Under the pieces are notes generated by a model that saw nothing but the letters and a program-made list of their open reading frames with translations, was not told where the DNA came from and did not search any database. Shown here piece after piece: positions 470 to 64,000 of a stretch of DNA of 64,000 nucleotides. Numbering within the stretch: position 1 is the stretch's first letter; each line of letters begins with the position of its first letter. The translations under genes were made by a program, and so were the position numbers. Origin of the DNA: Anthoceros angustus (taxonomy: Eukaryota; Plantae; Anthocerotophyta); NCBI GenBank assembly GCA_010909165.1, contig MU008220.1, positions 62,001 to 126,000 on the forward strand, read 5' to 3'.

Positions 470-699
470 TAAAGGAATACATGTGCTAGTTAATGATTGG
501 GGTTTGGGTTATTTAGTCAAGTTAAGCTCTTAGCATTATATGTGTCTTTTCATTAGGGTTACGTCGTTTGGATAAGACACGTTGATTCATAAGTCTCTTT
601 AGTTGTCTTTTCATATAACACATAAGTTTTATGTATGTTCTTGATACAATGTAATTATTATATATGTTTAATTGATCTGTATCTACCTAAATTACGTTA
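470..699 (+). repeat. 5' LTR of c1 (230 bp, TAA...TTA ends)
   Basis: Matches 7216-7442 with 4 substitutions and one 3-bp indel; directly abuts the PBS. Confidence 0.93.
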
Positions 700-1179
700 T
701 GGTATCAGAGCGCTAGATGCAGATCGCATTCTAGTGAATGCACATTGTAAAATGCATTGAAAAAGATGCATTTGCATATAGTTTCTGTTGTTTTTGATTT
801 AGAAAAATGCTTTCTTGATCAAGAAAATAGAAACATAAAGAAAGTGCTTTGTGTTGCTTTATTTATATAGATGCTCTTATAATTTCTAGCGATTAGAGTA
901 ATCCTAGCATCTCCTACGATTTGCTAGCAAAATCGATGAAGTGCACTAGGACAACCACCGATCCGCAGTAGATTATTAGAGGCATATCTATAAAATCAAA
1001 AATGTTGAAACAGACTTTCTAGCAACACATATGAATGGCCAACAATCGAGTGGATTGGCGTCCTCTTACTGATTCCGCCACGTAATCGCCGCAGAGGTCA
1101 AGTTGTCGGTGATGCACGAACTGCACGAGCAACTTCATCGGACACGCTATGCATCGACAGACGAATACAAACGGGCCTG

Positions 1180-1542
1180 TTGATGCGTGGAAATAAGAGA
1201 TTCCTTCACCAACTTGATTGGATCCCTCTTCCTGCACGCCAAGGTGCCCTACCACAAAGAAATTACAATCAGAGAGGTTTTCTAACAACACATGCTTCCC
1301 ATACATCTAGTGTTGATCAGCTAATAAACAGGATTGAGGGACATAGACAAAACGTCGATAGACGTTTCGATAGCATCTCTCAGAGGCTAATTGCAGTAAC
1401 TGTTGATCTGCATGATCTTATAGAAAAGATAGAACATGTGGATTTCAAATTACTAACCTTGTTGAAGCCTACCTTGCTTGCTAACCCTGCAAATAGGGGA
1501 GTAGCTTGTAAGCACGCTAAGAAAACAAGTAGAGCCCATTAA
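1180..1542 (+). CDS. Putative extra sense ORF in the c1 leader, coiled-coil-like, unknown function
   Basis: 120-aa ORF between PBS and gag with a heptad-like segment VDQLINRIEGHRQNVDRRFDSISQRLIAVTVDLHDLIEKIEHV. Confidence 0.35.
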   Translation: MMRGNKRFLHQLDWIPLPARQGALPQRNYNQRGFLTTHASHTSSVDQLINRIEGHRQNVDRRFDSISQRLIAVTVDLHDLIEKIEHVDFKLLTLLKPTLLANPANRGVACKHAKKTSRAH

Positions 1543-1792
1543 TATCCCCAAATTGCCCCTCAACATACGCTACAATAGGTGGCAAATTAGAGACCAAAAT
1601 TGGAAACATTGCAGAGAGGTCAATCGGATGCACTCAGAGAAGACAAAGTTGCCCAACTTTGTTGCTAACATCCTCTGACTTTGTTCGCATGAGAGTATGT
1701 CCCTGAGGTCCTAGAAAACAAACCAACAAAGGTCAATCATCTTAGTATCTTAGTGTTCTAGGAGTAGCTAACCTAGAACACAAAAGAGGAAG

Positions 1793-4700
1793 ATGGCTGA
1801 TCCCTCATCCAGCCATGGTGGGGAAGGGTTTAAGGAAAAGGATAGGTTTGGTGGTCAGGATTACGATATTTGGGTAATCCGCATGAGAGGAGCTTTACAG
1901 AATAGAAAACTCTGGAAGCTTGCTAACGGGGATGATGAATTCCCAGAAGCTACCACCTCTACACCCTCACCTTCTGAAAAGAAAAAACAGGACGAATGGG
2001 AAGCTAAGGATGAAGCTGCCATGTTCCTTATCCGGAGTGGTCTGACCTCAGACATGTTGAGGCAGACATCCGGATGTAAGACTTCAGCAGAAATCTGGAC
2101 AAGACTTCAGGACCTGTACTCAGGCAGCAACACAACTAGTCAGATGACAGCTTTGCGAAATTTGCAAAATTGTAGGATGAAGGATGGAGATTCTGTAGAG
2201 AAACACCTTACTCTATTCAGAACACTTGTCTCCAGACTGGAGAGTGCTTCTAGTGATGCCGTAAAGGATGATATGCTGACTTTGTACTTTCTACTATCCC
2301 TTCCCGATTCCTGGTCACATTTTGTGACGTCGTATAATGCCTCTCAGCTTCAGACTTCAAAGCTTGCGAAGGCTTCAAATGTTACACTTCCAGAAACCAC
2401 CTTCGCAGAGTTAGTGGGAGCATTGCTTCAAGAAGAAGCTACCAGAGGTCCTGGTAGACGCTCTGGAAAACAGCAAGCTCTTTACACATCCAACAGAGGA
2501 CGTGGAGGAGGAAAACCCTACAACAGAGGTGGGGGCAGTACATCTAGGGGTGGTGGCTCACAAGGACAAGGAGCCAACTATAAGAAACCCAAAAGGACAG
2601 GAAACTGCAACTGGTGTAAGTTACCTGGTCATTGGGAACGTGAGTGTAGAAAGAAGCAAGCCGGTGTGCCTCGCAAGGAGGGTTCATCTAGTGCTGAAAC
2701 TCACTTGGTTGTGAAGAAACAACCTACCCCTTCAGCCCTCACAGTAGGTACAAGAGTGTTTGCAAGTTCATACTTGTTTCCATCATGCCTGTCAGCAAAA
2801 TTAGAGGTTAGGCCTGTCGTAGACTGGTATCTAGACACGGGTGCTACAGCCCATATTTGCTTTGACAGAGGCTCTTTTCATACATACCGATCAGTCAAGG
2901 ATCAGTATGTTTACCTGGGCGATGACAGATCCTTGGTGTCTCCTGGTCGTGGCACAATAGATTTATCAGTTCCATCTGGCGTTGTATTAACCCTACATGA
3001 CGTCTATCACATGCCAGACATGACTCGAAATTTGATTTCAGTCAGAAAGTTGAATGCTGACAACAACTGTCACATGCTATTCACAAGAACAGAATGTCAA
3101 GTGCTGGACGCGTTTGATCATAGGAAGATCCTTGCCTATGGTTCAGCAGATCATGACTTGTTTCGTCTTCACATAAATAGTGGTGTTCCAGTTTCTCATT
3201 TGACAAGCGACATCACTACTGCATCTGCACAACAAGTGAGCAAGTCTAAGTTGTGGCATGCAAGACTAGGTCACCCTCACACAGCAAAACTTCAAAGATT
3301 GGCTGTGAGTGACTTTTACCAAGACGGACCAATTGGCAAACTGGCTCCACTTCCACTTTGTGAGTCTTGTGTTCTTTCCAAGAGACATCAGGCTGCTTTT
3401 AAGAACAAGGCACCTCACAGGGCTTCAGAGGTTTTAGAACTTGTCCATACAGATTTGTGTGGACCACTCTCACAGGAGTCGATAGGTGGTGGGAGATACT
3501 TCCTGACTTTTATAGATGACAAAACCAGGTTTGTCACCACCTACATTCTGAAACAGAAAGACGAATGCTTTGGTCACTTTAGGGATTACCTCAAGTATAC
3601 TGAAAGGTGGACAGGAAAGCAGCTTAAAACCTTGAGATCAGACAATGGGGGAGAGTTTACCTCGAATGAATTTCAGCTCGTAGTCAAGGCATTGGTCGCC
3701 ACCTAACGGGTCTGGTCTACACTCCCAATGTAATGGAGTCGAGCTGCCTTAATTTAACTCGCAGGAGACATCTTCCTTGCTACATCATGCTCAGCTTCCC
3801 TTGCCATATTGGGCAGAAGCCATCATGACTTCAACCTATCTCAAGAACAGGTTGCCCACAACTTCAGTTGTTGGCCTAACCCCCTATGAGGCCTTCATGT
3901 GTCGCAAGCCCCGCCTACACTTGCGAACTTTTGGTTGCGTGGCTTATGCCTTCATACCTAAGGAGAAGAGGAAAAAGCTATCAGATAAGGCTAGAAAACT
4001 TCTCATGATAGGATACACAGAAGGAATTAAAGCCTATAAGTTGTATGATGTCCCTAAGAACAAGATTGTGTATGCCAGAAGTGTTACCTTTGATGAAAGT
4101 CGCACTTGGGCATCAGTGGGAGCTGTTGAGGATCCTGTCCTCAATGAAGATGAAGATACAACAGGATTTGTTGATTCACAATTTGATCCAACAGATCATG
4201 GAACTCAGCCTGTTCCACCTGAGGACGTTGCTCCTGCAGGTGGGGATGACAAAGCAGATTTTGAGTTCGTTGACATCGATGCAGCAGGTGTAGTTGAACA
4301 AGAACACGTACCTATGCTGGAAGATCAAAATCAGCAAGTTTTACAGGACCAACATCCTCCTGAACAGAATGCTGATGCAGAACTGGAATTGGATGATACT
4401 CCTATTGCCAACCAACCCGTACAAGATCCCCAGCCTGAAGAACCACCAAGACGATACCCATCTCGTCAAAGGCAACCTCCAGACACACTGCACCGATTTT
4501 AGAGTTACTCTCACAAGTGGAGGTCAATGCAACGCCCCTCGGATTCTCGAGAACCACAATCCTACCAAGAGGCGTTGAGTAGACCGACCACAAAGAGTGG
4601 AGAAAGCAATACAATCGAGTATGACTCCTTAATTGAGAACGGCACATGGAGCTTGCTAATTACCACCGTGCGTAAAATTGGTTTCTTGTAAGTGGGTTTT

Positions 4701-6108
4701 CAAACTCAAAGTAAAGGCAGATGGTACCTTCGATAGGTACAAGGCTCGCTTGGTAGCAAGGGGTTTCTCACAAGTCCCTGGATTGGACTATCTTGAAACT
4801 TTCGCTCCTGTAGTCAAGCTTGCCACCCTTAGAACAATCCTTGCCATATCCACACACTATGATTATGAGTTGCAGATGTATGATGTTAAAACAGCTTTCC
4901 TACATGGAAAATTGGATACAGAGATATACATGCAGCAGCCTCCAGGATATGAGGTGAAAGGAAAAGAAAATCATGCGCTCAGGCTGATCAAGTGCTTGTA
5001 TGGCCTCAAGCAATCACCATGAAATGGAACGCTTAGACAATCGAATTGCCGGAATTAGGTTTCACAAAGAGCACGACAAAAGCCTTTATATCTACATAAA
5101 GGAGATGTAATCTTACCTTGCGTGTACGTGGATGACGATTCTCCCCAAAGAATGCCAAGCTTTTATAACAAGCATCATGTATATGCCGCCACTAAATTCA
5201 AGATGTCTAGCCTCGGCCCTTTACAGTCAGCCTGGATTCATATTCAAAGGAATAGCAGACTGGTGTGATGACATTGACTCAACCACGCTACCTTATGGAC
5301 AAGTTGGTCAATGCCTCAAGGATGCAAAACCCGCTTCTACCCCTCTTCCCACAGGACTTAAGCTTAGTCGAGTATGTCTCCTTCTACACAAGCTGAGAAG
5401 GATCAAATGTCAAAGATCCCCTACAGACAGGGAGTAGGTAAGCTAATATATGCATCGAACACAACGAGGCTGGAGGTGGCCTACACAACGAGTGCCCTAT
5501 CACAGTTCTTAGAAAATCCGGGTCCAGAACACTGGGCTAGCTTGAAACGTGCGTTTAGGTACTTGAAGGGAACACCAACTTTAGGTATTTCCTATGCATG
5601 CCAGATTGAATGACAGACCCTCGACATAGAAGCTTACACCGATTCTGACTATGCTGGAGATGTGGACACAAGGAAATCAGTCTCTGGCTATGTGCTTTGT
5701 TTTGCAGGAGGACCTATATGTTGGTCGAGCAAGAACCGACGGTGGCACTCTCACGTAGAGTAATATAGGGTGTTAATGCAATGCTAAGGAAGTTGTGTGC
5801 GATTACTTTTCAACTTGGGATTCCATCGCCTATGCACGACTATCTACACCGATAATCGTGGCTCGATGGCTTTAGCCAAGAATCCGTGTTTCATTCTGAC
5901 GAAACATGTAGAAGTCGAGTATCACTACATCGTGGAACCGTGGAGCTGGAACCATAGCACTAGTATGTACCAACACAAAGCAACCCGCGACATTCTCACA
6001 AAGGCAATCGAGCGTAGATGCTCATCAGAAACATGTCCAACGTTTAGGGATGGGAGAGTCAGCAGCTCTCTTATCCAGCAGCAGCAACAATCCAAAGTAA
6101 TGCTCTAA
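1793..6108 (+). pseudogene. c1 gag-pol polyprotein; open 1793-3706, then broken by frameshifts and stops
   Basis: Zinc knuckle CNWCKLPGHWERECR, protease WYLDTGA, WHARLGH and LELVHTDLCGP...RSDNGGEF (integrase), CKWVFK...YKARLVARGF (RT), RNase H remnants at 5640-6100. Confidence 0.93.
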
Positions 6109-6111
6109 GGC

Positions 6112-6724
6112 CTAGAAACCCGAGTCAAAGTTGCAATGGTCAGAGGAGTATCCAAAGTCAATAGACTCCCCAGAACGAAGAGACTCGGATTCGAACTCCT
6201 CCTCGTAGGAGTCATGGCCAAAACTATGAACAGAAGAAAAACTCTCATCTGATCTTGGAGAGTTGCGACGACGACGTTCTTCATAAGAAATTCGCTCTTC
6301 AGGCTCAAGATTAGCCTCTTCCTCCAGTCTGAAGTTTGACCCTGCAAGGAGGAAGTGGGAGCGAGAGAGGTTAGCACCACAAACAAAAAAAAAGGAAGAA
6401 CCAGAACAGGAAAGGTTCAGGATGCTTACTGTATATGCTTACGACATGACCAGGGCAAGGGTTGTAGATGCGCACGCTCACACGTTTCATGGTTATCTCG
6501 GTGCAACCTACCCAGACCTTGTACCAAACAGGTGAGCGCGGATACTTCACAGTGCCGTTACTGATGATTCTAGTTTCGGCGTCTCTGTCAGTAGGCTTTG
6601 GATAATTCAAAGGTGGGTCAGGACCATGAGTCTCGCCCTCACGGAAGGCAACAGTCGGAGCTGGGCGTGACTGTTTCACAGTAGCCTTGGGTCTTGGCTG
6701 AGGAGGAGCAGAAGGGCCACCCAT
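6112..6724 (-). CDS. Spliced antisense accessory gene of c1 (exon 6430-6724, intron 6342-6429, exon 6112-6341); N-terminus uncertain
   Basis: Minus-strand donor A|GTAAGC, branch GCTAAC, long pyrimidine tract, TTGCAG acceptor. The phase-1 join is in frame: ...HVVSIY-R-SNFRLEEEANLEPEE...DSGF*. Homologous segments occur in c3 and c5. Confidence 0.72.
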
Positions 6725-7215
6725 TTCAGACTTGAGGCAGCAGATTGGCGAAGCTCAAGAAACTCCTTTGTTGTTCCTTCGCCCACCGACGCCTTGATAC
6801 TGTGTATCTTGATGTCTTGGGAGCGCTTCACGCTGTTGGTAGTTGTCCTAGCTAACGCAAATCTTCCAAGGGCGTCTTGAGGGTTGCGGGCGCTTAGGAG
6901 TCGGCTCATAGTCGGAATCCGAGGAGGCCATGGCGGAGAGAAGTTCAAGATGAGAAATCCTACGCTCCAGCAAGCTGAGAAGTAACTGGCAAATGAATTG
7001 TGCCAAGGTTATATAGCACGCGCACCTCATCATCGTCGCCTTCACACTGGCAGAGTGCATCTTTACCAGACCTGGCAGAAAGGAGAGGACGTAACCAATT
7101 ACTGCAGATGATGTCTATGGAGTTTGAGAGCGAAGACCCAGCTGAACCTTCAGTCCACGGGCAGCTTGCAGTAGAGCCCGGAGACTGTACAGAGATCATT
7201 ACTAGCAAGTGGGAG

Positions 7216-7442
7216 TAAAGGAATACATGTGCTAGTTATTGATTAGGGTTTGGGTTATTTAGTCAAGTTAAGCTCTTAGCATTATATATGTCTTTTCATT
7301 AGGGTTACGTTTGGATAAGACACGTTGATTCATAAGTCTCTTTAGTTGTCTTTTCATATAACACATAAGTTTTATGTATGTTCTTGATACAATGTAATTA
7401 TTATATATGTTTAATTGATCTGTATCTGCCTAAATTACGTTA
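7216..7442 (+). repeat. 3' LTR of c1 (227 bp)
   Basis: Follows the PPT and duplicates 470-699. Confidence 0.93.
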
Positions 7443-8013
7443 TTTTCTGGCTCTTGTTCCACACCTCCTTCTCCAGTAGTTCGAGGCGTGTGGAGAGCTA
7501 TTCCTCTTGCTCGCGGCTTTCACCGCTTTTCACCGGTCGCTTGCGCCTCGTGGCTGGGTCCGGTTCCTCCTCAATGAAGCGCGCGCAGTCTTGCCTCGCT
7601 CCCAGCTCGCTCGCGGTGATGGCAGCTCCTCTTCTCGCAGCGCTGGTAGCCTTCCTTCCTTTTGCGCTTACGCTCCAATTCCAGCTCCAGCTCTAGCTCG
7701 TCGCGAAGTGGAGAAGCGCTGCCCAAAACTGCACTTTGCCCTCCTTAGATGTCTGCCACCTGGCGGCTGCACAACCCTAGATTGAGTTCATCATTCCATA
7801 ATATCGTCTTGCGCATCATAGGCGCATGCATATGGAGATGGAATTGTAAGCAAGAATCGTCGGACGAATGCAAGCACATAAAGGAGGAGTAAACTAGCAA
7901 TTTTGGAGGTGTTCTAAAATTTTGGAAACAACCTTAAAACTGAATTTAGTTCTAGACAAACCCAATTGATAGAATTGTAGAGCATAAATCTTGTTAGAGA
8001 TGTAACTCCCCAT

Positions 8014-16680: not shown

Positions 16681-18517
16681 TGTGGACCACGAACTCTCCC
16701 CGTGGGTAGGAAATGAGTTAGGTTTTGTTTTTTTCTAGAGGTCAGAAAATAAGGCGAGAAAGAAAATAAGCCCGGACTACTCGATCGCTCCAGAATAAGG
16801 ACCCTGAGTAGGTGGAAGGACTGGAGCACACTCCCAGGAGAGCCCAGACGATGTGGATAAGTCGGACCACACTCCGCATGGAGGAGGCAATTCAACAAAT
16901 CGACTCGGATTTTGGCCTACTACTCACGCCAAGCTCCTCAAGGCGTTGGAAGCCATGCAATCGGACGGACCTCCGAAGGGTCGAGGGAGTGGAGGAAGAA
17001 GGGCATGGGCATGGGCCCAGGCCTTGGTGGCTGTTTGGTGATGAGGCGGTGGAGAAGAGCCTGGGAGGAGGGACTGGCGCCAATGTAAACGCCCTTGAGG
17101 TAAGTCGCGCAACCAGCTGGGAGGATAGGGACGAGGGCCTGAAAGAGGTGAGGAGGAGAAACCAGCACTCCCAAGCAGGAAGGGACATTGGCGAGGGCAG
17201 GCCCCACAACGAGGCGGTCTGGATTGGGGTCCGGGACGAGGACGGACCACAGTAATAAGTTCGACCTCGTGAACCCTAGAGAACGAGACCGAACCTCGAG
17301 GTCCGGACTCGGGAAATAAGGCCGACTCAAGATCGACCCGGAGTCGAGACCCGGACCCCAGGGTCCGGACTCAGAGCTCATTCCGGCGTGCCTCGGGAGG
17401 CAGGTCAACCAAGGGTCCTACGAGGTGGGGACCCGAGAGAGGCTAGGAGAGGATGGTGGTGGTTAGCGGTTGTCGGGCCTTGGCGTGTAACGGCAGGTCT
17501 GGGGAAGGAAGGGGTCACGCCTCATGGATCATCCGATTGCTGTATACTTGCCAGACAAGCCTGTGGGGTCCTTCGGCTTGTCGTGGAACCAAGGAGCATT
17601 CCCAGCCCACCGCCAACGACGGAGATAGGGGCGAAGATGGTAGGCGGCGATTAGAACTGCGAAATGGCCACCCGCCTGAATAGGAGTGTAATAAGGCGCC
17701 GACCTTGGGCGTATAAGAGGGCCGGGTGCCCTAGTAAAGTATCTTTCTCTTGGTGTTGATCACGTCCTTACGAGCCCTTTCGTCTTCTTGCAACGTGAGC
17801 TTGGAGTCCTGAAAGCAGCAACTGACTCCCGGGAGAAGATGATCCAGTCTGACGGACCCTAACATGTGGTGTGTCACAAGGGACTGACGACCCAGGGACC
17901 CTTGCTCGCCCAGCGGAGCCAGAAGCGTTAGGGCGACGGGCAGTGTGGCCGGAGAACTCCGTGAGGCGTGGGGAGCCCACGGAGAGGCGGTGAGCGACGG
18001 AGGAGGTCCGGACCGCAGCCCACCATTTTTCCAAGGGCGATAGTGTCGACGAGAGATGTGGAGATTTAGCGTGAGTGATTTTAGTTGAGTGTAACGGTGG
18101 AGTGGGAGAGGGGCCAATTTGGAAGTGAGGGACGGAATGGAATGATCAGGGCCTTAACGCAGTCCTTAAACGTTTGGCCTCACCGAGGCTGTTAGTGGAC
18201 ATCTACGAGTTAGATAGTAGCGAAACGTTAAGCGTATGTGTTTGAGTCCGAAACGGTAAACGATTGAAACGTAGTCAAACGGAGCCCATCATTCTCTTGG
18301 GAGCGGACTCTTTACTACAAGGCTTCTTGGGATTGTGCGCGCCCGAGGCGGTCAGAAAGTCGCGCCAGCATGCACCTTTTCGGGGTTCACTGAATTCTCG
18401 GACGAAAGTAGCAATAGAACCATGAGTTTTAGGACAGCGTCTCAAAGCCCTCAAGGCTAGGAGTCTTCTCCCTCATCCGCCGAGCTCGGCACCTTCTTAT
18501 TGAATCCCTTCTTATCA
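16681..18517 (+). repeat. Long GC-rich gypsy-type LTR copy (~1.84 kb)
   Basis: TG...CA ends; colinear along its whole length with 22972-24856. Not followed by a PBS; no TSD. Confidence 0.75.
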
Positions 18518-18779
18518 GGCGGCTCGCTTCACCTGTGCCATTTCCTAACTCTTGCTATGATTTATGTGAGGCACAGCAAATTAGTGCGACTTGGGGAACC
18601 GTGGCTTGTGTCTCTCTCTGTGCCGCGGTGGCTCACGTGAATTTGTCAATGGCACTCGCTTACAATGTGAATTTGTCAATGGCTGGAAACCCGGTAGGGC
18701 GTATACAACGTGCAGATCGCTTTGCAATGGACCTTGTGTATGAGACTCGTTGTGAATTTGGTGTAAAAGCGTGCGAGGC

Positions 18780-33146: not shown

Positions 33147-34178
33147 CTAGAATTCCTCATATTCACTGGAGCTTGTTGGGCCGAAGAAAAGTGACCTCTG
33201 GCCCTTATTCTCTCTGAGTAGTGCTAGGAAGTTCAGGTCATATTCAGATTCACTCTCGGTGTGGTCATCGTCTTCAGTGTTATACTCCACACCAGCCTCT
33301 TCACACATGGTTCTCTTGGATCTTGTAGGGACAGAATGGTTTCCCTAGTTAGTATCAACATGTAAGAAGTTGTACAAACCCACGAAACAGTGGGAGTAGT
33401 TAGTGCAAGTGACTTACTATAAAATGAAATGAAGTTTCCTCCTTCACCTCCCCATCTGTACTAGTATTCTCTGATCATTGCAATTCCAGTGCTTTCACAT
33501 GTATAGACATCATGGAGTCATAGGGTCACTGTATCAGCATCTGAAAGCACTCTTACCTCCCTGGTGTGACTTCCTTTTCCTAACTTGAAGTGCCTTGCTT
33601 TGTAAGTCATTGGGAGCGAGCAGTGTGCTCGCTGTGACGCCAGTCTCTCTTGTCCATTGTCCACAGCTCATTGAGTGGGCCCGAGACTTCACAGTGTGGT
33701 TGTCAGCTGAAAAGTCTTGGGTGTCTGGTTGAGACACTCGAGGTGCCCCTGGTTGCCTGTTGTTTGCTTGCAGGCGAAGTTCACGCATCTCATTCTCTAG
33801 CTTGGTCTTCTCATCTTCAAGGCGCTGGACCATGCTTCGCCAATATGCATGGCTTCTACGGCTCTCAGCTCTACTTCTCCGGAGCCAATTTGGAGTGTTT
33901 CCATGCTTCGGACAGCTAAGACTTGCACAGGTGCACTTCGGCGATGGGCTTCCTCATCGAACTCCTGTGCGTGCGCATGGTGCTTCTGGTGACTTCTCCA
34001 GTTTTGAGATCAGATTGTCATTGCCTTGAGTGGCCTCGACTTCCGGCTCTGTCTTTGCCTGCATCATGTGCTTCTTCCTTGTTTCCTTTGCTGAGTAGAA
34101 GGCTTCATCGTTGTCCTCCGACTCAGAGGACACAGCAATTGGAGCTCTGGCTGATCCGCTTGCTCCTCTTGTTCCCAT
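33147..34178 (-). pseudogene. Decayed spliced antisense accessory gene of c3 (intron 33323-33417, last exon 33147-33322)
   Basis: TL*LHDVYTCESTGIAMIREY*YRWGGEGGNFISFY then A|GTAAGT; branch ACTAAC; acceptor apparently CAG>CAA. Last exon is open: SKRTMCEEAG...SSSEYEEF*. Upstream S/E-rich and coiled-coil fragments. Confidence 0.65.
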
Positions 34179-34319
34179 GGCTGGTAGCTGCTGAACTGGA
34201 ATAGAAGCTCGTCTGTCTCTCTGGGTTCTTTGGATGGAGCAGGAGCTTTTATGACTGCGCGTGTGAGAGCTACTTGGACGTTTGAGGAGTAACCCGTGTT
34301 CTCTGATAGCAATGATTCT

Positions 34320-45093: not shown

Positions 45094-45578
45094 AAGCATC
45101 ATGTCTGTCTCTGCACCATGGGGAGCCATTCCTGGAATACTACGAAGGTATCCGACTTCATATGGATTGGGTAAGTCCAAGAATATCTACTAAAATGATC
45201 AGTGATTGTGAGATAATACTGTGCTCCATCAAGTGAGGAGACATGGATCTTGCCTGAGATATCGGAATGTACTAACTTTAAAGGTTGAGTAGCTCGATGA
45301 GCCATTTGCTTTGGAAAGGGCATTAATGAAATGTTTAATTATATAATATGCTTATAAACAGACTTACGGTTACATTAGAATAACCGTTAATGCCCTTGTA
45401 TATAAACAATTAGTTTTATCAATAATAACTGTTCTCTCTTTTTCTCTTGCGCGCGTCTGCCTCGCATCCGCTCTCGTGCCCCCTGGCACGGATCGCTTTA
45501 TGGTATCAGAGCCATGGATTTGATCTAAGCTTGGTGCGGCGGTGCAGTTGGATAGCATCCCATGCCCAATCTTCAGAC

Positions 45579-46265
45579 ATGCCGAGGCGCAGAGTTGTGA
45601 CTCATTCGTCACGCCGGAGCAACCCGATTCCCCATCCTCAAACGAATCGCGGCGTCATTTGCTCAGGCTGTCTCATTAAACGGAGCACACAACTTTGGCG
45701 AAAGCCTGAACACCAGCAGGATTGTGAGATCATACCTGACCTTTCCTGCTGTGAGTTCGGAGACAAGGGCGCGAACGCGAAGGGATCAGATCTCATATCT
45801 GATCTGACCACGGAGCTTCATCGGCGTCAACAGTTGACTCGCAAGCCTGAAGAACTCAAGGAAGCCCACGAGGTCATCCGCAGGCAATCCTCACTGATTC
45901 AGGGCCTGAGTGAAGCTATTAAAGACCTTTACCTTACTTGCGAGGCTCATAACATCCTGGAGCAAGGGCGTGTTCGGAAGGCTGGGTGTGATGTCTCTAA
46001 CCGCGTGAAAGCGCATCAGTGTCTCTGATTGAGCGCAGGCATGCCAAGCCCTGAGGATGATGTAGATGACGAACTCAACGATGCAGATGCGGGCTTCGTG
46101 AGTGAAGATGTTGGGCAATCTTATCTCCTCAGCTGGTCGACTTACGGACTTGGCGCATCTTCGCCGGCTCGGGCTTGGAGGGCTTGCGCTTCCTGCGAAT
46201 CTTTGGTTTCATCGGATATCCAGGTTACAGGGTACAGCAGATTTCTTTGGGTCTCTAGGCTTTGA
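45579..46265 (+). CDS. Putative extra sense ORF in the c2 leader (one in-frame stop at 46026-46028)
   Basis: ORFs 45447-46028 and 46029-46265 are contiguous in one frame, with a Cys cluster (CSGC...DC...CC), a coiled-coil-like segment and an acidic EDDVDDELND patch. Confidence 0.45.
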
Positions 46266-46387
46266 CAGTGCATGCAACACGGTAGCGTCTTCACATCGAG
46301 GCAGAACCACACACACACTGGTTCGATTGGGCGTAGATTTCGACTTTTGCCTCCAATCCTCTTGGAGCGGTTTCTTCATTACAACCT

Positions 46388-49300
46388 ATGGCTGGAACGA
46401 TTGTCCCTGGCACTTTGAAGATTGAGTTCAAAGACCGGGATCGTTTTAATGGCACGGACTATAGTGTTTGGGCCATGAGGATCTCACAGATCCTGGAGGA
46501 ACATGAACTTATGTCGGTGGTGGATGGTTCAGAACCGATGCCTACACCGACTAATCTTAATGCTGCAGATGTTCTTGCCTGGAAGCGTAAGGATAGGCGA
46601 GCCAGGTCTATCCTTATAGGCTCTCTGGACCGCAATATGATGCCTCATACACTAGAAGCTGCAACCTCTGCAGCAGTATGGAATAATTTTATGTTGATTT
46701 ACAAGGACAGGAGCTCAGCATCACTCATCCACGCCTTTAGGGACTTCTTCACTATGCGCATGAAGGAGAATGATACGGTTGAATCTTATATCAACAAGTT
46801 TCGCACTAAGCGAGCAGATCTTGCATATTGTGGCACAACACTCGGCACGAACAGTGGCCACTCTTGTGCTGCGAGAGCTATAAGCATTTTATCAGCTCAC
46901 AGTGCCATAATAAGAGCGGCGGGGACAGTGCTGCGGCGGAGTCAACCATCATCCACATTGGAAGAGGTCTTCGGTGCCTTACTTTCTGAGGAGCGACAAC
47001 GAGGCCTACAGAAGAATAAGGCATCTACACCTAACGACACTAGAGTGTTATACTCCTCCAGAGGGAGAGGCGGAGCCTTTCGTGGACGTGGACGTGGTAG
47101 AGGCTCTTCAATGGCGGCTAAGCAGCCCAACTTGCAGAGGAAGACATTTACATGTAACTGGTGTAAAATACCTGGTCATTTCGAGAAGGATTGTAGGAAG
47201 AAGAAGGCAGGTGAGCCACGTAGGGAATCACCTCCTGGAGAGTCCATCTACCTAACCACCAAGAATGGTGTTCCTCAAAGATCTCCTTCTATTTTAGCTG
47301 TGTGTCTTTCCTCCATACAGATTCAGAATGATATGTGGTTTTTAGATTCAGGGGCTACAAGTCATATCTGTTTTGACAGGAGAGCATTTAGTGACTTTGT
47401 ACCCTCCCAAGACAACAAACAATTTGTTTTGCTGGGGGATGATAGTGGCTTGGCCATCAAGGGAACCGGTACAGTGAGTGTGGTCCTCCCAGATAGTTCC
47501 TATCTTGTGCTGACTGGAGTCCTTTTCGTCCCTGCTATGACTAAAAACCTCATGTCAGTCCTTAAGCTTTCTCAAGAGCATGGCTGTCGAATCTGTTTTG
47601 ATCACAATGGTTGTTCAGTCACCAACTTATCTGACTGGGGAGAGTTATTTACTGGCACACCTTATAATGACCTGTATCTCTTAGATGTTCGTACCTACAT
47701 CACAGTGCCCACAGCTCAGTCTGTTAGTTCATCACCCTTTTCCCCTACTCAGCTGTGGCATTGTCGTTTAGGTCACGTTAATTTCCAGAAGCTCTCCTCT
47801 CTTGTCAAAAGTGACAGTTTTCGAGATCCTTTAAGCTTCTCGTTTGATGAGCATGCTTTCTGTGATGCCTGTCAGACAAGCAAAGCTATCTCACAGCCTT
47901 ACAAGGATAAGAACCTGTCCAGAGCTCCTTGTCTCCTTCATACGATCCACAGCGACATATGTGGATCTATGTCCACCTCATCTTTTGGTGGAGGTTTGTA
48001 TTTTATAACCTTTATTGATGAGTGGAGCAGATATACTACAGTCTACATTCTACAACACAAGAGCGAAGCACTGTCAGCCTTTAAACAATACCTCCATGCT
48101 GCTGAAAGGCTGACAGGTGCCAAGGTTAGAATACTACGTACAGACAATGGAGGTGAGTACGTTAGTCATGCATTCAGAGAGTTTTGTGTGACAGAGGGAG
48201 TTCAACACCAGTTTACGGTGCCTTACACACCTGCCCAGAATGCCTTTGCAGAGCGGAAGAACAGGACACTGCAAGAGGCCACATTGTCCAGTTTGTCTTT
48301 TGCTGGACTGACTCGTGGATACTGGGCAGAGGCTCTTGTAGCCGCCAATTATGTGCAGAATAGGTTACCCACCAAGGAGCTTGGTTTGGTGACACCTTAT
48401 GAAAGGTGGACGGGGAAGAAGCCGCGTATTCAACATCTTCGGATATTTGGTGCTCCAGCTTATGCTCTTGTGCCTTCAGCATTACGCACAAAGCTTGACC
48501 CCAAGGCTGTCCGACGTATCTTCGTTGGCTACTCGGATGACGTCAAGGGCTATAAGCTGTTTGATCCTCGCACATGCCAGATATCCTTTGCACGAAGTGT
48601 GGTATTTCATGAAGCAGCTCTTCTTCGTCGCCATCACGCCATTTTATCACCTGCTGCTCCTCCTCCTCAGATCTCTGTACATGGTGTTGATGATTCGGCT
48701 GACTTTGGTGATGAGGCTGATATCTCCTTCTTTGATCTTGCTTTTACGGAGGATTCAGGTTCTACTTCTTGACGAGAACCCAACACAGCAACAAGCTGTT
48801 AGTCAATGATGAGTCACTGCACCACCTCACCATCACCTTTCTTCCTCACCTCCAGTTCCATCAGCAGCCTCCCCTTTATCAGATGAGTCTTCTCCTTTTG
48901 TTGTTGAGCCTGCTGTTGAGGAAGCCATTGAAGTTGCTGAACCTCCTGACTCACCACCTCCTCTTCGCAGGTCCTCGCGTATACGTCGTCCTATGTCAGA
49001 GTGGGCCGAGCCACCCTTTGTAGCTGGTTCTGTTTCCCAGTCTACACCTCAGGCTCGAGCCTATAGCATTGTCAATTCCCTCGGGGAACCTGCTACATAC
49101 CAGGAAGCTATAACAGGTCCTGAGTCTGCACACTGGCGTAAGGCCATTGAGTCTGAATACAACTCTCTGATTGACAACAAGACATGGACTTTGGTAGATT
49201 TGCCCCCAGGTCGCAAGCCTGTAGCTTGCAAATGGGTTTTCAAGAAAAAGCTAAACACTGATGGCAGTGTGGGTAGATACAAAGCTAGGCTAGTTGCTAA

Positions 49301-50647
49301 AGGGTACAGCCAAGTTGAGGGTCTAGATTATAACGAGACCTTTGCCCCAGTAGTAAAGTCTACCTCAATTAGAAAACTCCTGGCTTTAGCAGCCCAGTTT
49401 GATCTCTTGGTGCATCAGCTAGACGTTAAAACAACTTTCCTTAATGGATCCTTAGAAGAAGAGATTTTTATGGCTCAGCCAGAAGGGTATGTTGTTGATC
49501 CAGCCAAAGTTTGTAAGCTACTAAAAACTCTTTATGGCCTGAAACAGTCTTCCAGAGCCTGGAATGAGACTTTTCATGCCTTACTTATAGAGCTGGGCTT
49601 TACCTGTTTAACAGCAGACACAAGCGTGTACATACTATGGGATGGTGATGACTTTATAATCCTGACGGTGTATGTTGATGATAACTTCCTTTTTTGTACC
49701 TCAGCAGCGCTTATGGAAAGGATCAAAAAGGTTCTTTTATCTAGATTCGAGATGACTGACCTTGGACAGCTTTCCTTTTCTCTTGGTGTACGATTCCACT
49801 TTGACAGTAGGAATCATTGTATCGACATACATCGAGCATTTAGGTACCTTGATTACTAGAGCAGCTTCAACATGGAGGATTATGGCTTTATCCCTCCCAT
49901 GTCTACTGGCGAAAAGCTTTCAAAGGCGATGTCCACCACTCGAGCAATGCAAAAAAGCCATATAGGCGCGATTGGTTGTCTTATATACCTGGCTGCTTGG
50001 ACACGTTTAAATATTTCAAGGGCAGTAAGCAATGTTTCACAGTTCCTTGAAAATCCAGGAGAAGCGCATTGGTCTGCCGTGAAAAGGATATTCCATTATC
50101 TTAAGGGAACTCCACGATATGGCCTGCGATATGCAAAGCGAGGCGATGGGCTACGCCATCGGCTCGTGATCTTTGGTGGTAGGACCCAGACACACGTAGA
50201 AGTGTAGCAGCCTATTGCAACATGTTAGGTGGATCAGTGATATCTTGGAGCAGCAAGAAACTTGCCACCATATGCTTGTCATCTACGGAAGCGGAGTATG
50301 GGGCCCTTTCACAGGCTGCGAGGGAGATTTTATGGATAAGGTCCTTTCTTAGAGGTTTGCAACAACTCAGTCCTGGAGCAACGAAGCTCTGGTGTGACAA
50401 CCAGTTAGCTATTGCGCTATCCAGGAACCCAGTTTTTCATGCACGAAGCAAACATATAGAGATCACTCACCATTTTATAAGGCAAGCTGCAGGCACGGGT
50501 GAAGTTACAGTTGAGTACATACCTACTGGAGAGAATGTAGCCGATTTGTTGACAAAGGCATTGCCCAAGCCTTTACATCAGAAGCATATGGCGTCTACAG
50601 GTTTACATCTAGTGCCTGCTTCTACAAAACATGGTAAAGCTCATTAA
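46388..50647 (+). pseudogene. c2 gag-pol (794-aa open gag-PR-INT; RT/RH frameshifted)
   Basis: CNWCKIPGHFEKDC, WFLDSGA, WHCRLGH, RTDNGGEY, YKARLVAKG, YVDD, RSKHIE. Confidence 0.95.
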
Positions 50648-50670
50648 CACTTGCTCCCTTGCTGGTTGGT

Positions 50671-51537
50671 TCAGTCAAAGGGGAACCTATTACCCATCTT
50701 CTCTTTGAGCTCTAGGATCAAGGCTCCCACCTTTCTTGTTTCCTGCAGTACTGTATACCAGCCAAAGCAGACATGTTAGGGTCACAGTGTTGTTGAGTAT
50801 GTGCAGGCTAAATGGCAGAAAGACAAGTGGATGAAGCATCATTGCTTACATGAAATCGTTGTCTCTTCTGCGTCCATCTCATCCTCATCTTCAGGTAGGT
50901 TAGCAAAAATGTCACGCATATCATCTGCAGAGGGAGTCACAGGGATACTGAATGGTGTAGCTCGGAGCAGAATTCCAGTCTTCTTTCCTTTCACTGCCCC
51001 CTGACTCTCACGAGAGATGATGTACTCCCCGTAGTATGCATGCTCGCCCTCTTCCTTGGGAAAAGCTCTCAGCATCATCTCCTTGTACTCCTCCGTGCTG
51101 ATTCTTCTGCTCAGGTCACCAGGCTTACCAAAGACAATCTCATGAGGAGTCTGCCATACTTCTTGTTTGGTGATCTTCACTGGAATCATAGTCACAGCTT
51201 TGTGTGCCACTTTTCTGCACTGTTGTTCTTGTGTCTTGTCAGGGTCGTCGATGTCGATCGGGTGTGCCTGATGAACCATGTGGAGCACCATTCTTGAGGG
51301 TATGCTTAGTTCTTTGGCACCCATTGGCGCCCTATGTATGCACTCCATTCCTCTGGTACAGGGCGCCATCACGATCGACAATGGTGGCACCAGCCGCAGG
51401 CGATTATCGGGACCTTGCGGCCGGGAAGATGGCCAACTGCGCCGGCACCGGCTGAAGGACAAGATGCGAGCTTGGTGTGGAGGCCATGATTTTATAGCTG
51501 GCGCGAACTCTCTCTTGGAGCGCAACTCTATCTTCAA
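50671..51537 (-). CDS. Spliced antisense accessory gene of c2 (exon 50850-~51537, intron 50751-50849, exon 50671-50750)
   Basis: 232-aa minus ORF whose stop falls just inside a T|GTAAGC donor; branch CCCTAAC; TACAG acceptor. The phase-1 join gives ...EETTIS-L-LQETRKVGALILELKEKMGNRFPFD*. Start codon uncertain. Confidence 0.62.
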
Positions 51538-54500
51538 GCGTAAGTTCGCAAGGCGTAGAACACTGGAGTGAGAGCTGTGTTAACAGCAGAAGGCGTACAG
51601 GAGCATGCAGAACCTCTGACGGGTCCGTAGCATTGTGGAGCCCGTTTCTATGATGGTCAATTAAGAGCAATTAAAGTTTGATTCTGTTCATTGCGCATAA
51701 GAGGGAGTAATGAAATGTTTAATTATATAGTATGCTTATAAACAGACTTACGGTTACATTAGAATAACCGTTAATGCCCTTGTATATAAACAATTAGTTT
51801 TATCAATAATAAATGTTCTCTCTTTTTCTCTTGCGCGCGTCTGCCTCGCATCCGCTCTCGTGCCCCCTGGCACAGATCGCTTTAGGCATCTCCTTCTGCT
51901 TAGCTACCACACAAGTATCGCAAAGTGGGAGATCCTTGAAGCACTTCAGAAGAGGTTCATGATAATAAGATAAATTGTACATCTTGGTAAGTTTATCTTT
52001 GTTGGGGTGACCTATTCATGCATGCCAAAGACTGGCTTGTGCAGCTTGAGATTTTTCAGCAATATATGAGGCTCTTTGGGGGAAGACACTGCAAGTCCAG
52101 TTTATACAAGTCATGAGTAAGCACCCCTTTTGCTATGACTTGGCCTCCTGCACCTCGAGTTTTAAGCAAACAGCCTGCTAAGGTAATGAGCAAATCGTGA
52201 AGTCGGAGTCCCATAAGTTGGCTAACAGAGATGAGATGTTTGGCCATCTGTGGTACATGCAGCACATTGTCCAAGCGGAGCACAAATCCTTCATCAAGCT
52301 GAAAGCTGCAGCAGCCTGTCCCCTGAATGAGAAGTCCGGTATGTGAAAGCTCATCTCCCAATAACACTCTGTCAGAACTATGTGAAGGTATAAAGTTGCT
52401 GAACATAGATCTGTTGTTACAAATATGGGAAGTAGCTCCAGAATCTAAGTACCATTGGTTGGAATTGGGTGCAGAAGCAAGGCATACAATCATCATCATA
52501 ACAGGATGTCTAGTGTTTGATCTAGACTGTGGTGATTTCTCCTTGGCGACAGCATGAGCTTCAGCCTGTTCAGAGGGTTCTCAACTTGTCTTGGATCGCT
52601 AGCCTTCTTCTTTTTGCGTTCGCCCTCCCAGTGGCCTTGTATATTGCACAAGTTGCATGCTCCGATCACTTAGAGGAGCCAGTGAAAACCCAGGTCTTGA
52701 TTAACGCTTCTACAGATCTTCCCTTTGTGAAAAGCACTTTGTCATGCTTGGTCTTGGAAGACTGGCTAGAACTAGCATGGCTTTGCTCCTCTGATGCAGG
52801 CCGACACGCCTGAGACTAATCCGGTGTTGCGCAGATAATCTCGTTCAGACGGTACCAGGATAGTCGGTGTCCACATATAATCATGTGGTTCCACTTATCT
52901 TGTTCGTCTTGTGGTGTGGTTGATGCAGGCTATGCGAGTGTGCCGTCGACCACCAACCATACGTGCCAGGCTTCAAGGGCGGATTTCATCCGCACATGCC
53001 AAACCTCATACTTCAAACCATTGAAGCGATCACGCTCTTTAAATTCAATAAAGGAAGAGAGTTGTTGAAACAGTGGAGCTTATTGGATTGGAGTAGGCGG
53101 ATTGGAGCTAGAGGTTCCTAACATCTTGATCTCTTGCTAATAGCGGCAACTACTGATGCTATGCAATGGGCAGTAGTTGCTTCAACAGGGGATCTAAATG
53201 TAAGGAATGGCCAGTATTGAACTTGAAACATTGTCGTTTTGTGTGAGCAGGTGCGCCGGCAACTATGCAGGAAGCTGAGAATGCCTGCAAGAGCGAGATC
53301 CTGTTGCTAATGGCTCACAGTGGTTGGTATCTCGAGGGAGTACTCGAGGAAGCTGCCATGTCATGGCGCCTGATCTCGTCAACGAGCAGAGTGCGCTCCA
53401 TCAAAGAAATTAATCTGGCCTGCTGAGCAGCAAAGTTGCCAAGTTGGGCGAGAACAATGTCTTGGTTATGGAGACTAAGGAGAATCCATTCTTGAACCAG
53501 AGCCGCACGAGCAGATTTATCAAAACGCCAGTATGTCTAGAAATCACCTTGGCTATCTTGCGACTCTGGGTAGGATGTCCTTGTTTCTTTGATGAAATGT
53601 GCAGAAGAACGTCGATCATGAGCTGCGCAGATCAGTGCTTCAGCACTAGGAGCTATTCGCGTCCGTCCAGGTGAACTTAAATGTCATGGAATTCTAGAGT
53701 AGGAGTGCACATTCTTCTGAGCTGCTAAGCTTGCTTATGTTCACATTTCAGGGTCTGCATAGCGGAAGTTTGTAGTAGGCCGAATGAGCCATAGTGGGAA
53801 TATTTTCTTTTGATTATTCTTCCCCTCCTAGGCACACGATCCTGGCCTCATCAAGAAATGGGTACATGGTCTAGTGACCAGTTGGATGTCTCACCATCAG
53901 CAGAGTAGTGTGAGCACACTCACAACTTTGACATGTCTTAGACTTAGGCTAGACATAGATGTGCGGCTCTGATACCATAAGAAAAGTCAGAGCCGGGAAG
54001 CAGGGAAGCAGAGACTCAATGTACAAAATGAACAAGTAAGTAAGTTAAACACAGGGCTTGGCTGACATACCAAATCTTTTAGGGTTTGTTCATGTAACTT
54101 AATGTAACCTAACAACTCTATAAGTATAGACCACCTATACTTTCTTTGGTATGCTCAACTAGAGGCAAGCCTCTCAACACGCCTTGGCTTGTTTGGCAGC
54201 ATCAAACCTCGACGCAGCAAGCCCTGAAATTGCTCACACTATGAGTCAGTCAGGATCCATTAGTGGTACCTCTCAGTCGTGAGTTGGGATGCGGGGGTTA
54301 TCCTTGGTGTGTTCATGCTTTTCATGGGGCTGGGCTGTAACTCCACATCGTGTAACTCCTCATCTATAAAGCCCCGGAAACGTCTCTAAAAAAAACCCTG
54401 CACATATATTTTCGGTAAGATTTTTTAATTAAAAATTTACGAAATTGGGCAAATGATGCAATCTTCCTGGTACCTACCGTAATGAATGACGCCGATTGGC

Positions 54501-54735: not shown

Positions 54736-58047
<3,312 letters not shown>

Positions 58048-58432
58048 AGCACGGATTTGAGTCGCAAGAATATGAGCGCCCACCAGCGTCAATTGCTGGT
58101 CTGTTTTTGTGCCTGAGGTCTTCCTTCTTCGAGACTGTTTTGAAATAATGCCTACGATGCCCAGCATCGGTTTCTTCACGTTTGATAGTGTGAGAAACTA
58201 GATTCACCCCGGGATGACGTGAATCGGTGTGCGGATTTCAGGACTCAGCAATGCACGTCAGTGTAGATTGCTTATTCGTTGATCGCTGATTTGTCATTTG
58301 AGCAAATTTTGCAAGAGAGTAACGCCCCTCACTACGTAGCTGGTAAGGAAGTGACAAGTGCTGGATTCCCAGCAGTCTAGGACCACGCCAATTCACTCTT
58401 GCACGAATCTCCGTGCCCTCAATCTCGGCGCT

Positions 58433-59445
<1,013 letters not shown>

Positions 59446-59825
59446 AGCACGGATTTGAGTCGCAAGAATATGAGCGCCCACCAGCGTCAATTGCTGGTCT
59501 GTTTTTGTGCCTGAGGTCTTCCTTCTTGAGACTGTTTTGAAATAATGCCTACGATGCCCAGCATCGGTTTCTTCACGTTTGATAGTGTGAGAAACTAGAT
59601 TCACCCCGGGATGACGTGAATCGGTGTGCGGATTTCAGGACTCAGCAATGCACGTCAGTGTAGATTGCTTATTCGTTGATCGCTGATTTGTCATTTGAGC
59701 AAATTTTGCAAGAGAGTAACGCCCCTCACTACGTAGCTGGTAAGGAAGTGACAAGTGCTGGATTCCCAGCAGTCTAGGACCACGCCAATTCACTCTTGCA
59801 CGAATCTCCGTGCCCTCAATCTCGC

Positions 59826-61778: not shown

Positions 61779-64000
61779 TGTAATAGGTGCATATCAATTA
61801 CGTATTGAGTAATTACATTGTTATGTATTCATAGAAGAATAGAGTACATAAAACAAGCAAGCAACTGAACTTAACTTAATTGCGAAAAGGCATGACCTTT
61901 GGCTAACGGACGTAACCTAATGAAAAGGTAAGTAGCTAAAATAAGACTAGATATACATACACACTATATATCGGAATATAACTAAACCCTAAGTAATGAC
62001 TCAACATTCTATCTCCAATACTCCCACTTGTTGATCATTGCATAAAAGGACAGTCTTCTTCTCCGCGCGCTCCTTGTGAAAGCTGCTGCTTTTGAGCTTG
62101 AGTGTGTGTGTACCAGATTGGCAGCTCCAGGCAACCGACTTCATAAGAGCGTAATGGAACAGCTCAGTGTGAAGGCGATCCCTTACAGGTGTGCCATAAG
62201 CATAATAGCCGCTTACGTCCGTTTTCATTACATCACGGCTTTTGGGCGTGACTCTAAGCAAGATGTCTGCTTCTGAGTCTGAAGACCTCTCCTTACCTGC
62301 CAAACATCGTGTCTACCATAGGGATGCTCTAGGGTTTCTGCAACTAAAACGATTGCCTCTTCTTCTCGTGAGAAGGAAGGAGCGGCTCGAGCGCAAGCGG
62401 TAGGACTTCTGGCGGGCGCCGCCTAGAGGCGGCCAAGGGGACAACGAGGGCAGTGCTTGAGCAACGCCGCTGAGCGCTGCGGCCGGCAGAAGAAGGCAGC
62501 GGCTAAGCAGCCAAGAGCGGCATGGGGGCACCATCCCGTCGTTCTACACCGCCTGAACCTGTAAGACAGACATTCTCATGAGCTTCATTTGATGCCCACA
62601 GATGTGAGGGGTGAATTCTAGTACGCCTCCCGTGAGCCACATCCTCCTGCGCCACCCAAATTCCCTGAGCCCAAAGGAGTTCGCCGACAAGTTGTCACCC
62701 TCGGCTCGTTTGGAAATACATTTGGTATAGGTGTGCAGCCTCAGGGCTGAAGATGGTCCGCGTTCGCGTCCAAGATTGCCCAGGTTTTAAAGACCATGTC
62801 ATCAGCTTCTACAGTAAGTTGCTTAAACTGTTTGTGGCAATCTTCCCTGTTGCATTTTTGCTGTGAGCAACATGTTTGAGCAGCCCCCTGCTAACTTGCG
62901 TGTATCGACCTTGTTCATGTGTGTTGCTCCCCTCACTCCCAGCGTCAAGAACTGGAGGAAGAGAGAGCTGGAGACAAAGAGAGGATTTTCATACCAGAGA
63001 GAAAGGCGGAATTCCCCTGTTACGGTGGAGAAACGTTCACCTCCAAGTCAGATAGTCTTGCTTCCTGGGAGAAGATTTCAGACTCTTCCCCTTCAGTCAG
63101 CATGGGATCCTTGAGGTCTGCTGTGGATTACAGTACCAATGACTCGGACGATGACAGTAATGATTGGGGCTGCACCTAGCTGTTAGGCTAGGTTTTGGTA
63201 GGTGGGGCCTCTGGGTAGCCTTCATGGTTGCCCATGCCAAGACTTTTCATGTGTCTGTAGTGTACATCCCTGCTGAGGGACTTAGTGAACACATCTGCTG
63301 GATTCTCTGCGGTTGGTATATATTCCAGCATGATTTGACCAGACTTGATGAGGTCCCTGATGAAGTGATACTCCACCTCCACGTGTTTCGTGCGAGAGTG
63401 GAATACGGGATTTTTAGCCAAGTTCATTGATCCATGGTTGTCTGTTTTTATCGTGGTGCAGGTTGGGAGTGGCAGCCCTAGTTCCTTGAACAACAATTTG
63501 CACCAAGCAATCTCCTTGGCTGAAACACGATACTCAGCCTCGATGCTTGATGTGGCAACGGTGGGCTGTTTTTTACTGGACCAGCAAATAGGTCCACTGC
63601 TACCATAACGACGTGCCACAGGCGATCTTGTGTATCAACATCTCCGCATAGTCAGTCGTGTATACATCCAACTCGATGTACGCCATGAATAATGTCGAAC
63701 TTGATCCCTATGTTTGATGTTCCTTCAAGTACCTAACGACTCTCTTAACTCCTGTCCAGTGTTTTTGTCCAGGATTTTCAAGATATTGAGAGTACGCTTG
63801 TGGTATAGGCAACATCGGTGTGTGTTGGTGCATAGATAAGTTTGCCAATGCCCTTCCTGTAAGGGATTGACCTCATCTCGTCTTTATCGCTTTGTGTTTC
63901 AGGACTCATGGACTTGCTAAACTTCAGTCCACAAGGTAGTGGGGTAGCTGTTGGTTTTGCATCCTTCAAGCCAAGCTGTTCAGCACATTCTAACAGGTAG
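61779..64000 (-). mobile_element. 3' end of Ty1/copia element c5 (runs off the window)
   Basis: RT/RNase H fragments 63188-64000 (WSSKKQPTVA, RTKHVEVEYHFIRD). PPT CAAGTGGGAG at 62021-62030; the LTR starts TATTGG at 62020, resembles the c1 LTR and ends at ~61779-61781. Confidence 0.9.
62522..63179 (+). pseudogene. Spliced antisense accessory gene of c5 (intron 62814-62942), frameshifted
   Basis: MGAPS... at 62522; PRLVWKYIWYRCAASGLKMVRVRVQDCPGFKDHVISFY then A|GTAAGT; GCTAAC at 62890; CCCAG acceptor. Last exon LEEERAGDKERI...SLRSAVDYSTNDSDDDSNDWGCT*. Confidence 0.68.

Follow-up and report, generated by a model that had tools for sequence, protein, structure and literature searches.

A putative spliced antisense gene between pol and the 3' LTR of Ty1/copia retrotransposons in Anthoceros angustus

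Elements of the window and their antisense frames

The DNA analysed here, 64,000 nucleotides of contig MU008220.1 from Anthoceros angustus (the window), is a nest of LTR retrotransposons. Three of its elements, c1, c3 and E46, are Ty1/copia elements by domain order and Pfam families, with PF14223, PF22936, PF13976, PF00665 and PF25597 preceding PF07727 in each of them. An identical 12-mer, the putative PBS, follows the 5' LTR in four elements of the window and is found at 701 in c1. The gag-pol region of c1 is interrupted at least five times by stops or frameshifts. No target-site duplication is present at 465-469 and 7443-7447, on the two sides of c1, which may reflect recombination between two copies or mutated flanks. 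Coordinates of all features are collected in the table.

Long spacers behind pol had been described in a sequence-only reading of this DNA and were found again, with 1,107 nt in c1, 1,060 nt in E46 (probably the element called c2 in that reading), about 1,150 nt in c5, if the predicted LTR border is used, and at least 1,200 nt in c3. In c1 the spacer ends in a purine-rich tract at 7207-7215. The same reading had proposed that the c1 spacer encodes, on the antisense strand, a two-exon gene starting at Met 6724, with a donor at 6429, an 88-nt intron, a CTAAC branch motif and an in-frame product of 174 codons, and a base-by-base check recovered every one of these features. The ATG occupies 6724-6722 and is followed by an open frame down to 6431, after which the A at 6430 forms the first base of a split codon directly before the GTAAGC donor. 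The CTAAC motif is located about 30 nt ahead of the acceptor AG. By arithmetic the splice is in frame, 98 codons, one split codon and 75 codons adding up to 174, and the second exon lies tail to tail with pol, separated by a gap of 3 nt from the pol stop that ends at 6108.

Judged by composition, the predicted c1 product begins with a basic half rich in Pro, continues with a short motif containing aromatic, Cys and basic residues, and ends in an acidic, Ser-rich tail. The conserved motif lies at about 6570-6431 and thus comprises the last 45 or so codons before the donor. Exon 2 is purine-rich on the antisense strand and of low complexity; in the region 6105-6386 (minus strand) two antisense frames are open, the 75 codons of the spliced frame and an ORF of 93 codons. 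As a background for ORF length, 47 unrelated copia loci from metagenomes were used; their longest antisense open stretches behind pol reach up to 143 codons, with a median of 80. The c1 antisense ORF is ordinary in length and falls inside this range.

Table. Positions of the c1, c3, c5 and E46 features within the window
Feature	Position	Strand	Remarks
Ty1/copia element c1	470..7442	+	231-bp LTRs at 470-700 and 7216-7442, 97% identical
c1 gag-pol	1793..6108	+	domain order gag, protease barrel, integrase, SH3-like, RVT_2
c1 spacer	6109..7215		pol stop to 3' LTR, 1,107 nt
c1 antisense exon 2	6112..6341	-	75 codons (6341-6115) and TAG at 6114-6112; acidic, Ser-rich
c1 intron, phase 1	6342..6429	-	88 nt; GTAAGC donor, T-rich body, CTAAC at 6374-6370, AG at 6343-6342
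c1 antisense exon 1, minimal model	6430..6724	-	Met 6724, 98 codons and one base
Possible 5' extension of c1 exon 1	6725..6931	-	putative; ATG 6931, frame shared with Met 6724
TATA-like box (TATATAA) in c1	7009..7015	-	putative; some 80 nt ahead of ATG 6931
14-nt block identical in c1 and c5	7036..7049 (c1); 62165..62178 (c5)	- (c1); + (c5)	upstream of the TATA-like box
c3 antisense-gene copy, pseudogene	33147..34180	-	motif about 33529-33418, donor 33417, stop 33149-33147
Copia element E46	45324..51884	+	LTRs 98% identical, target-site duplication GGCAT, spacer 50648-51707
E46 antisense open frame	50839..51537	-	232 codons, first ATG at 51369
c5 antisense-gene copy, pseudogene	62242..63179	+	motif 62678-62813, donor 62814, last-exon stop 63177-63179

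Two further copies of the antisense gene are found in c5 and c3. The c5 element lies on the minus strand and continues past the right end of the window, so that its 5' end is outside. Its pol stop is at 63188 and the last antisense exon ends 8 nt from it. In the 83 codons before the donor the c5 motif frame contains four in-frame stops, and the stretches resembling c1 show two changes of frame in exon 1 and one in exon 2. The intron ends at 62942 or at 62949, and the splice is in frame only if the AG 7 nt further on is used. In c3, which has an intron of about 94 nt and a last exon ending 60 nt from the pol stop at 33086, five in-frame stops fall within the 150 codons that precede the donor, and the splice is out of frame. 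Unless the later AG is used in c5, the splice is in frame in c1 only. Only the c1 copy is open, and only from Met 6724, the copies in c5 and c3 being pseudogenes; the copies of the antisense gene in the window are old.

No LTRs were detected for c3. Its putative PBS is at 26122 and its 3' side adjoins a gypsy RT fragment. Because a 3' LTR of c3 could not be found, its 3' end is taken to be truncated or rearranged at 33954-34706. On the minus strand of this interval, one uninterrupted open frame leads from the Ty3/gypsy RT fragment (RVT_1) into the 5' portion of the antisense gene of c3. Two more rearrangements were noted in c3, namely a repeat in the leader between the PBS and gag (26163-27053, two tandem units of about 420-437 bp that are about 91% identical) and a tandem duplication of 1.4 kb, about 92% identical, at 28739-31491 within the coding region.

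E46 resembles the other elements in layout only. A TATA-like box is present at 51490-51496, a GTAAGC at 50849 at the end of the open frame and a CTAAC at 50779, together with possible acceptors, and the antisense frame of 232 codons exceeds that of every one of the 47 control copia loci (maximum 143). No sequence similarity of this frame to c1, c5 or c3 was detectable. The antisense gene is thus seen in three elements of the window, and in a fourth by layout only. E46 itself was inserted into the integrase region of another copia element on the minus strand (45102-45323 and 51885-53976), which carries the putative PBS 12-mer at 53976 and seems to be truncated after integrase.

Several other repeats share the window. 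For a degraded minus-strand copia element at about 12.4-16.2 kb no LTRs were found, and the spacer of about 30 nt that the sequence-only reading gave for a conventional copia element, c6, was not confirmed. Direct repeats of 1.9 kb, about 77% identical, GC-rich and with a strong G-over-C skew, are located at 16681-18501 and 22972-24841 and may represent the LTRs of a large old element; a second repeat pair lies nearby (18538-18737 and 20680-20868). Satellite-like DNA at 57639-60467 consists of two tandem units of 1.4 kb that are 96.7% identical, each of which holds an array of five 45-bp repeats and an array of four 63-65-bp repeats.

The start of the gene is probably located some 200 nt upstream of Met 6724, at ATG 6931, as short resemblances between the copies indicate. 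ATG 6931 is the first ATG past the TATA-like box of c1, which is placed some 200 nt inward from the border of the 3' LTR, and in c5 and c3 Ser/acid-rich starts like that of c1 also come after TATA-like boxes. The resemblance of these N-termini among c1, c5 and c3 is not significant, and no significant protein-level conservation was found in the 5' half of exon 1. A start at ATG 6931 suggests an ancestral first exon of 167 codons. The c1 stretch 6725-6931 contains two in-frame stops, while another frame is open across it, so the c1 copy would be broken as well if the gene did begin there. The 14-nt block shared by c1 and c5 is the longest exact word common to their spacers; it precedes the TATA-like box by about 20-30 nt and might serve as a promoter element.

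Conservation of the antisense frame between elements

All comparisons are made on three or four copies from this single 64-kb window, two of them pseudogenes. For the motif, the antisense frame pair of c1 and c5 scores 75, the next pair 22 and the best sense frame 26; the null is 24±3.7 and none of 1000 dinucleotide shuffles reached the observed value. The motifs of c5 and c3 score 42 against 21±3.3, again with 0 of 1000 dinucleotide shuffles reaching the score, although there is no similarity between the two at the DNA level (z = 0.8). The motif alignments of these two pairs are hence better than their shuffled controls, and each is so in a single antisense frame pair only. The score of c1 versus c3 by itself was reached by 101 of 1000 shuffles and is not significant, so that c3 is linked to c1 only through c5. 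Of the claim that three elements encode alignable peptides, the pairs c1/c5 and c5/c3 were borne out and the direct pair c1/c3 was not.

When the whole spacers of c1 and c5 were compared in all frames, one antisense frame pair scored 99 against a null of 41±4 and the sense frames at most 44; read in sense, the spacers show no conservation. At codon positions 1, 2 and 3, c1 and c5 differ 23, 11 and 28 times, the second position being the best kept. Their pN/pS is 0.58, with pN of 0.40-0.57 and pS of 0.68-0.81, synonymous sites being near saturation. The four residues that precede the donor are the same in c5 and c3, yet their codons contain six nucleotide differences, including a switch between the two serine codon families. 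That the conservation is at the amino acid level and restricted to a single frame implies purifying selection on a protein in the period when the lineage was replicating.

This conservation follows the exon structure. At the DNA level, c1 and c5 are similar in the motif (z = 6.5-7.2) and in exon 2 (z = 5.9-7.7), and much less so in the intron (z = 2.2-2.3). Outside both exons they are clearly conserved only in the pol C-terminus (z = 17.9), and the pol C-termini of the motif-bearing elements are only 43-52% identical. The common phase-1 donor and branch motif proposed earlier were seen as described: in c1, c5 and c3 an A|GTAAGY donor in phase 1 comes directly after the motif and each intron contains a CTAAC, the introns ranging from 88 to about 136 nt. 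For comparison, the background density of GTAAGY is 0.5 per kb and strand, and only 17% of the sites in the window have a CTAAC 30-130 nt downstream. No intron sequence is conserved between the elements, the donor phase and the branch motif being what is kept. An acidic, Ser-rich last exon stopping close to pol had also been proposed for all three; the stops at 3, 8 and 60 nt from pol are there, and homology of exon 2 is supported for c1 versus c5 only, that of c3 being alike in composition only.

Taken as comparative evidence, this pattern is the signature of a spliced coding gene and not of a conserved DNA or RNA element, and it points to a conserved antisense coding region with a common intron position in at least three diverged copia elements.

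Searches for related sequences

For the database searches, each antisense exon was used as a separate query. Neither c1 exon 1 nor the E46 ORF gave a match in word-index searches of proteins. Using HMMER, c1 exon 1 was compared with 1.84 billion representative proteins without yielding a true homologue, and only two matches were returned, both of them repeat proteins whose scores add up many weak stretches. The first, P0001, is a surface protein of bacterial origin that carries Ig-like repeats, and the second, P0002, contains an 18-residue chance match repeated ten times and is not matched by c5; both were rejected. In Pfam no family was obtained for the c1 and c5 antisense pieces at E ≤ 1, and the FANCI_S1-cap match of the E46 ORF was discarded as being at chance level (E 0.063, 13.6 bits versus a cut-off of 28). 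The antisense pieces found no match among PDB sequences, and Rfam none over the window. Single-sequence AlphaFold models gave no fold and no secondary structure for c1 exon 1 (pLDDT 47) and were too poor for the E46 ORF (pLDDT 38).

Neither exon 1 nor the pol C-terminus, when used to scan metagenome and viral contigs, revealed a copy of the gene. In 80 metagenome copia loci (L001-L080), the nearest relatives of the pol C-terminus among those contigs at only 42-54% identity, the antisense peptides were absent by tblastn as well as by motif profile. Many of these loci come from a few sample series, and the record of L020 is named 'plant metagenome'. The best RT relatives of the window elements are 50-56% identical and spread over many taxa. 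An exact look-up of five ORFs from the window in the protein collection found none of the five, and no paralogue outside transposons was found in the searched collections, which do not include the source genome. Because the source genome is not in these collections, the blanks in the protein databases constitute weak evidence.

Interpretation, alternatives and relation to known systems

We consider it fairly probable that the post-pol spacer of this group of Ty1/copia elements carries, or once carried, a small antisense protein-coding accessory gene under selection. In this gene a TATA-like box would be followed by a first exon ending in the motif of about 45 codons, a phase-1 intron and an acidic, Ser-rich last exon. 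Transcription would start from an internal promoter within the spacer and would give a protein of 174 residues in c1 from Met 6724, perhaps of about 243 codons ancestrally from ATG 6931. Such a protein would be mostly disordered, with its basic Pro-rich half, short motif and acidic tail, and might act as an accessory factor on the expression or replication of the element itself, in analogy to what has been proposed for the antisense gene of Grande. An intron that is antisense to the genomic RNA is not spliced before reverse transcription. Every new copy would inherit the intron because it stays in the genomic RNA.

The selected accessory protein put forward in the sequence-only reading is thus upheld as far as the motif is concerned, which is conserved as amino acids and indicates past selection; conservation of the intron does not extend to its sequence. 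For the anti-silencing or VANC-like function suggested there, no support was obtained, no search having returned a named match. A wider version of our proposal, in which a deep-rooted and clade-defining spliced antisense gene of Ty1/copia elements has its own promoter and encodes an orphan protein that acts in trans on the life cycle of the element or on silencing by the host, seems doubtful to us.

A different origin of the conservation would be that an ancestral element captured a gene of the host, or part of one, in antisense orientation, in which case the former constraint on the donor gene and shared descent would account for it, without any role in the element. Gene capture by LTR retrotransposons is documented, although captured genes are usually sense-oriented (PMC7264820). 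An intron and a TATA-like box would be expected from a captured, host-derived gene, and all copies but one are broken. What makes this explanation unlikely in our opinion is that the motif was retained between elements with such divergent pol C-termini, implying long maintenance inside elements; the lack of a homologue outside elements in the databases searched points in the same direction but weakly, as the source genome is not in them.

One might also suppose that the antisense RNA, or a DNA or RNA cis-element, regulates the element, for example through double-stranded RNA formed with the genomic transcript, and that the reading frame is incidental. The antisense transcript would be complementary over its whole length to the 3' portion of the genomic RNA, the 14-nt block and some promoter-like features are conserved and most copies are not open. 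A regulatory RNA would however not explain why conservation is frame-specific and at the protein level, with c5 and c3 lacking DNA-level similarity, why the second codon position is best kept or why synonymous codon families are switched, and we hold it to be distinctly improbable as the whole explanation. If the accessory gene is real, its mRNA would have this same complementarity to the genomic RNA, and an effect at the RNA level may coexist with a role of the protein.

It is very improbable that the unspliced transcript is the message, which would yield in c1 a read-through protein of 117 residues with a hydrophobic tail and leave the acidic 'exon' noncoding. The tails are indeed hydrophobic in c1, c5 and c3, but this follows from the T-rich composition of the introns, and the sequence of the tails is not conserved. 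Likewise, the homology of exon 2 is weak beyond c1/c5 and c1 exon 2 is open in two frames; on the other hand, donor, branch motif and acceptor are all kept, and exon 2 of c1 and c5 is conserved at z = 6 when the intervening intron is not. Chance, in the form of random open frames and a meaningless alignment of peptides from spacer DNA with a balanced AT/GC content, would fit the ordinary length of the c1 ORF and the insignificant c1/c3 comparison, but is refuted by the whole-spacer test and the motif shuffle tests (0 of 1000 shuffles reaching the c1/c5 or the c5/c3 score) and by matches that agree in position, strand and splice phase, and its probability is practically nil.

Antisense ORFs between pol and the 3' LTR have been described for the gypsy elements Grande, RIRE2, Retand, Ogre and Boty (PMC7264820). 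The best comparison for the putative accessory gene is with this class, named aORF-3R or eORF-3'R (Grande gene23, RIRE2, Retand, Ogre; PMC7264820, PMC6317226, PMC11963269), which occupies the same place on the opposite strand and which, as seen here in the collections searched, is without relatives outside elements, is common to related families and probably has its own internal promoter. There are, however, clear differences. The host here is Ty1/copia and not a gypsy element of the Tat/Retand/Ogre type, the product is much smaller and interrupted by an intron, and it does not match the Pfam domains reported for that class, among them the plant mobile domain and Transposase_28. Neumann et al. 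surveyed additional ORFs of at least 250 codons, a cut-off far above the size of our product; among copia elements these are typical of SIRE only, where they occur in 74% of elements and in sense orientation, and in each copia lineage the reverse-strand 3' class either does not occur or stays at a few per cent (PMC6317226, supplement 5). The env-like eORF-3'F of SIRE/Maximus (PMC6317226) likewise adds a gene behind pol and ahead of the 3' LTR in a copia lineage, but it is long and in sense orientation, whereas the gene proposed here is antisense, short and spliced.

In full-text searches of the literature, no antisense gene with an intron was found for copia elements, in agreement with the novelty claimed earlier. 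The layout is known from gypsy-type elements; in copia a spliced antisense gene appears to be new, as far as the searchable literature goes.

Three other systems are alike in principle. Retroviruses have spliced antisense genes, for instance HBZ of deltaretroviruses, which encodes a bZIP protein from a promoter inside the LTR. The likeness, by analogy and not by sequence, is that a reverse-transcribing element has at its 3' end an accessory gene that is antisense and spliced; the host kingdom is another one, HBZ is a bZIP protein and the promoter would here lie in the spacer instead of the LTR. In the cassettes used as indicators of retrotransposition, an engineered antisense intron survives reverse transcription. 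Those cassettes are engineered markers, whereas the antisense-intron arrangement described here is natural. VANC of the VANDAL DNA transposons, finally, is also an accessory protein encoded by an element and with a fast-evolving sequence, but it belongs to a different transposon class, and the Pfam, PDB and protein searches gave no VANC-type match.

Copia elements are usually treated as uniform gag-pol elements, apart from the sense env-like ORF of SIRE. If the accessory gene proposed here is real, accessory genes would have evolved in copia as well as in gypsy elements, and the antisense-intron trick of engineered reporters would occur naturally. Surveys of long uninterrupted ORFs (at least 250 codons) would miss such genes, since a two-exon gene with exons of less than 170 codons escapes selection by ORF length, and annotation pipelines would overlook them because each exon is short. 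Transcript and proteome data could then be searched for a new family of orphan proteins.
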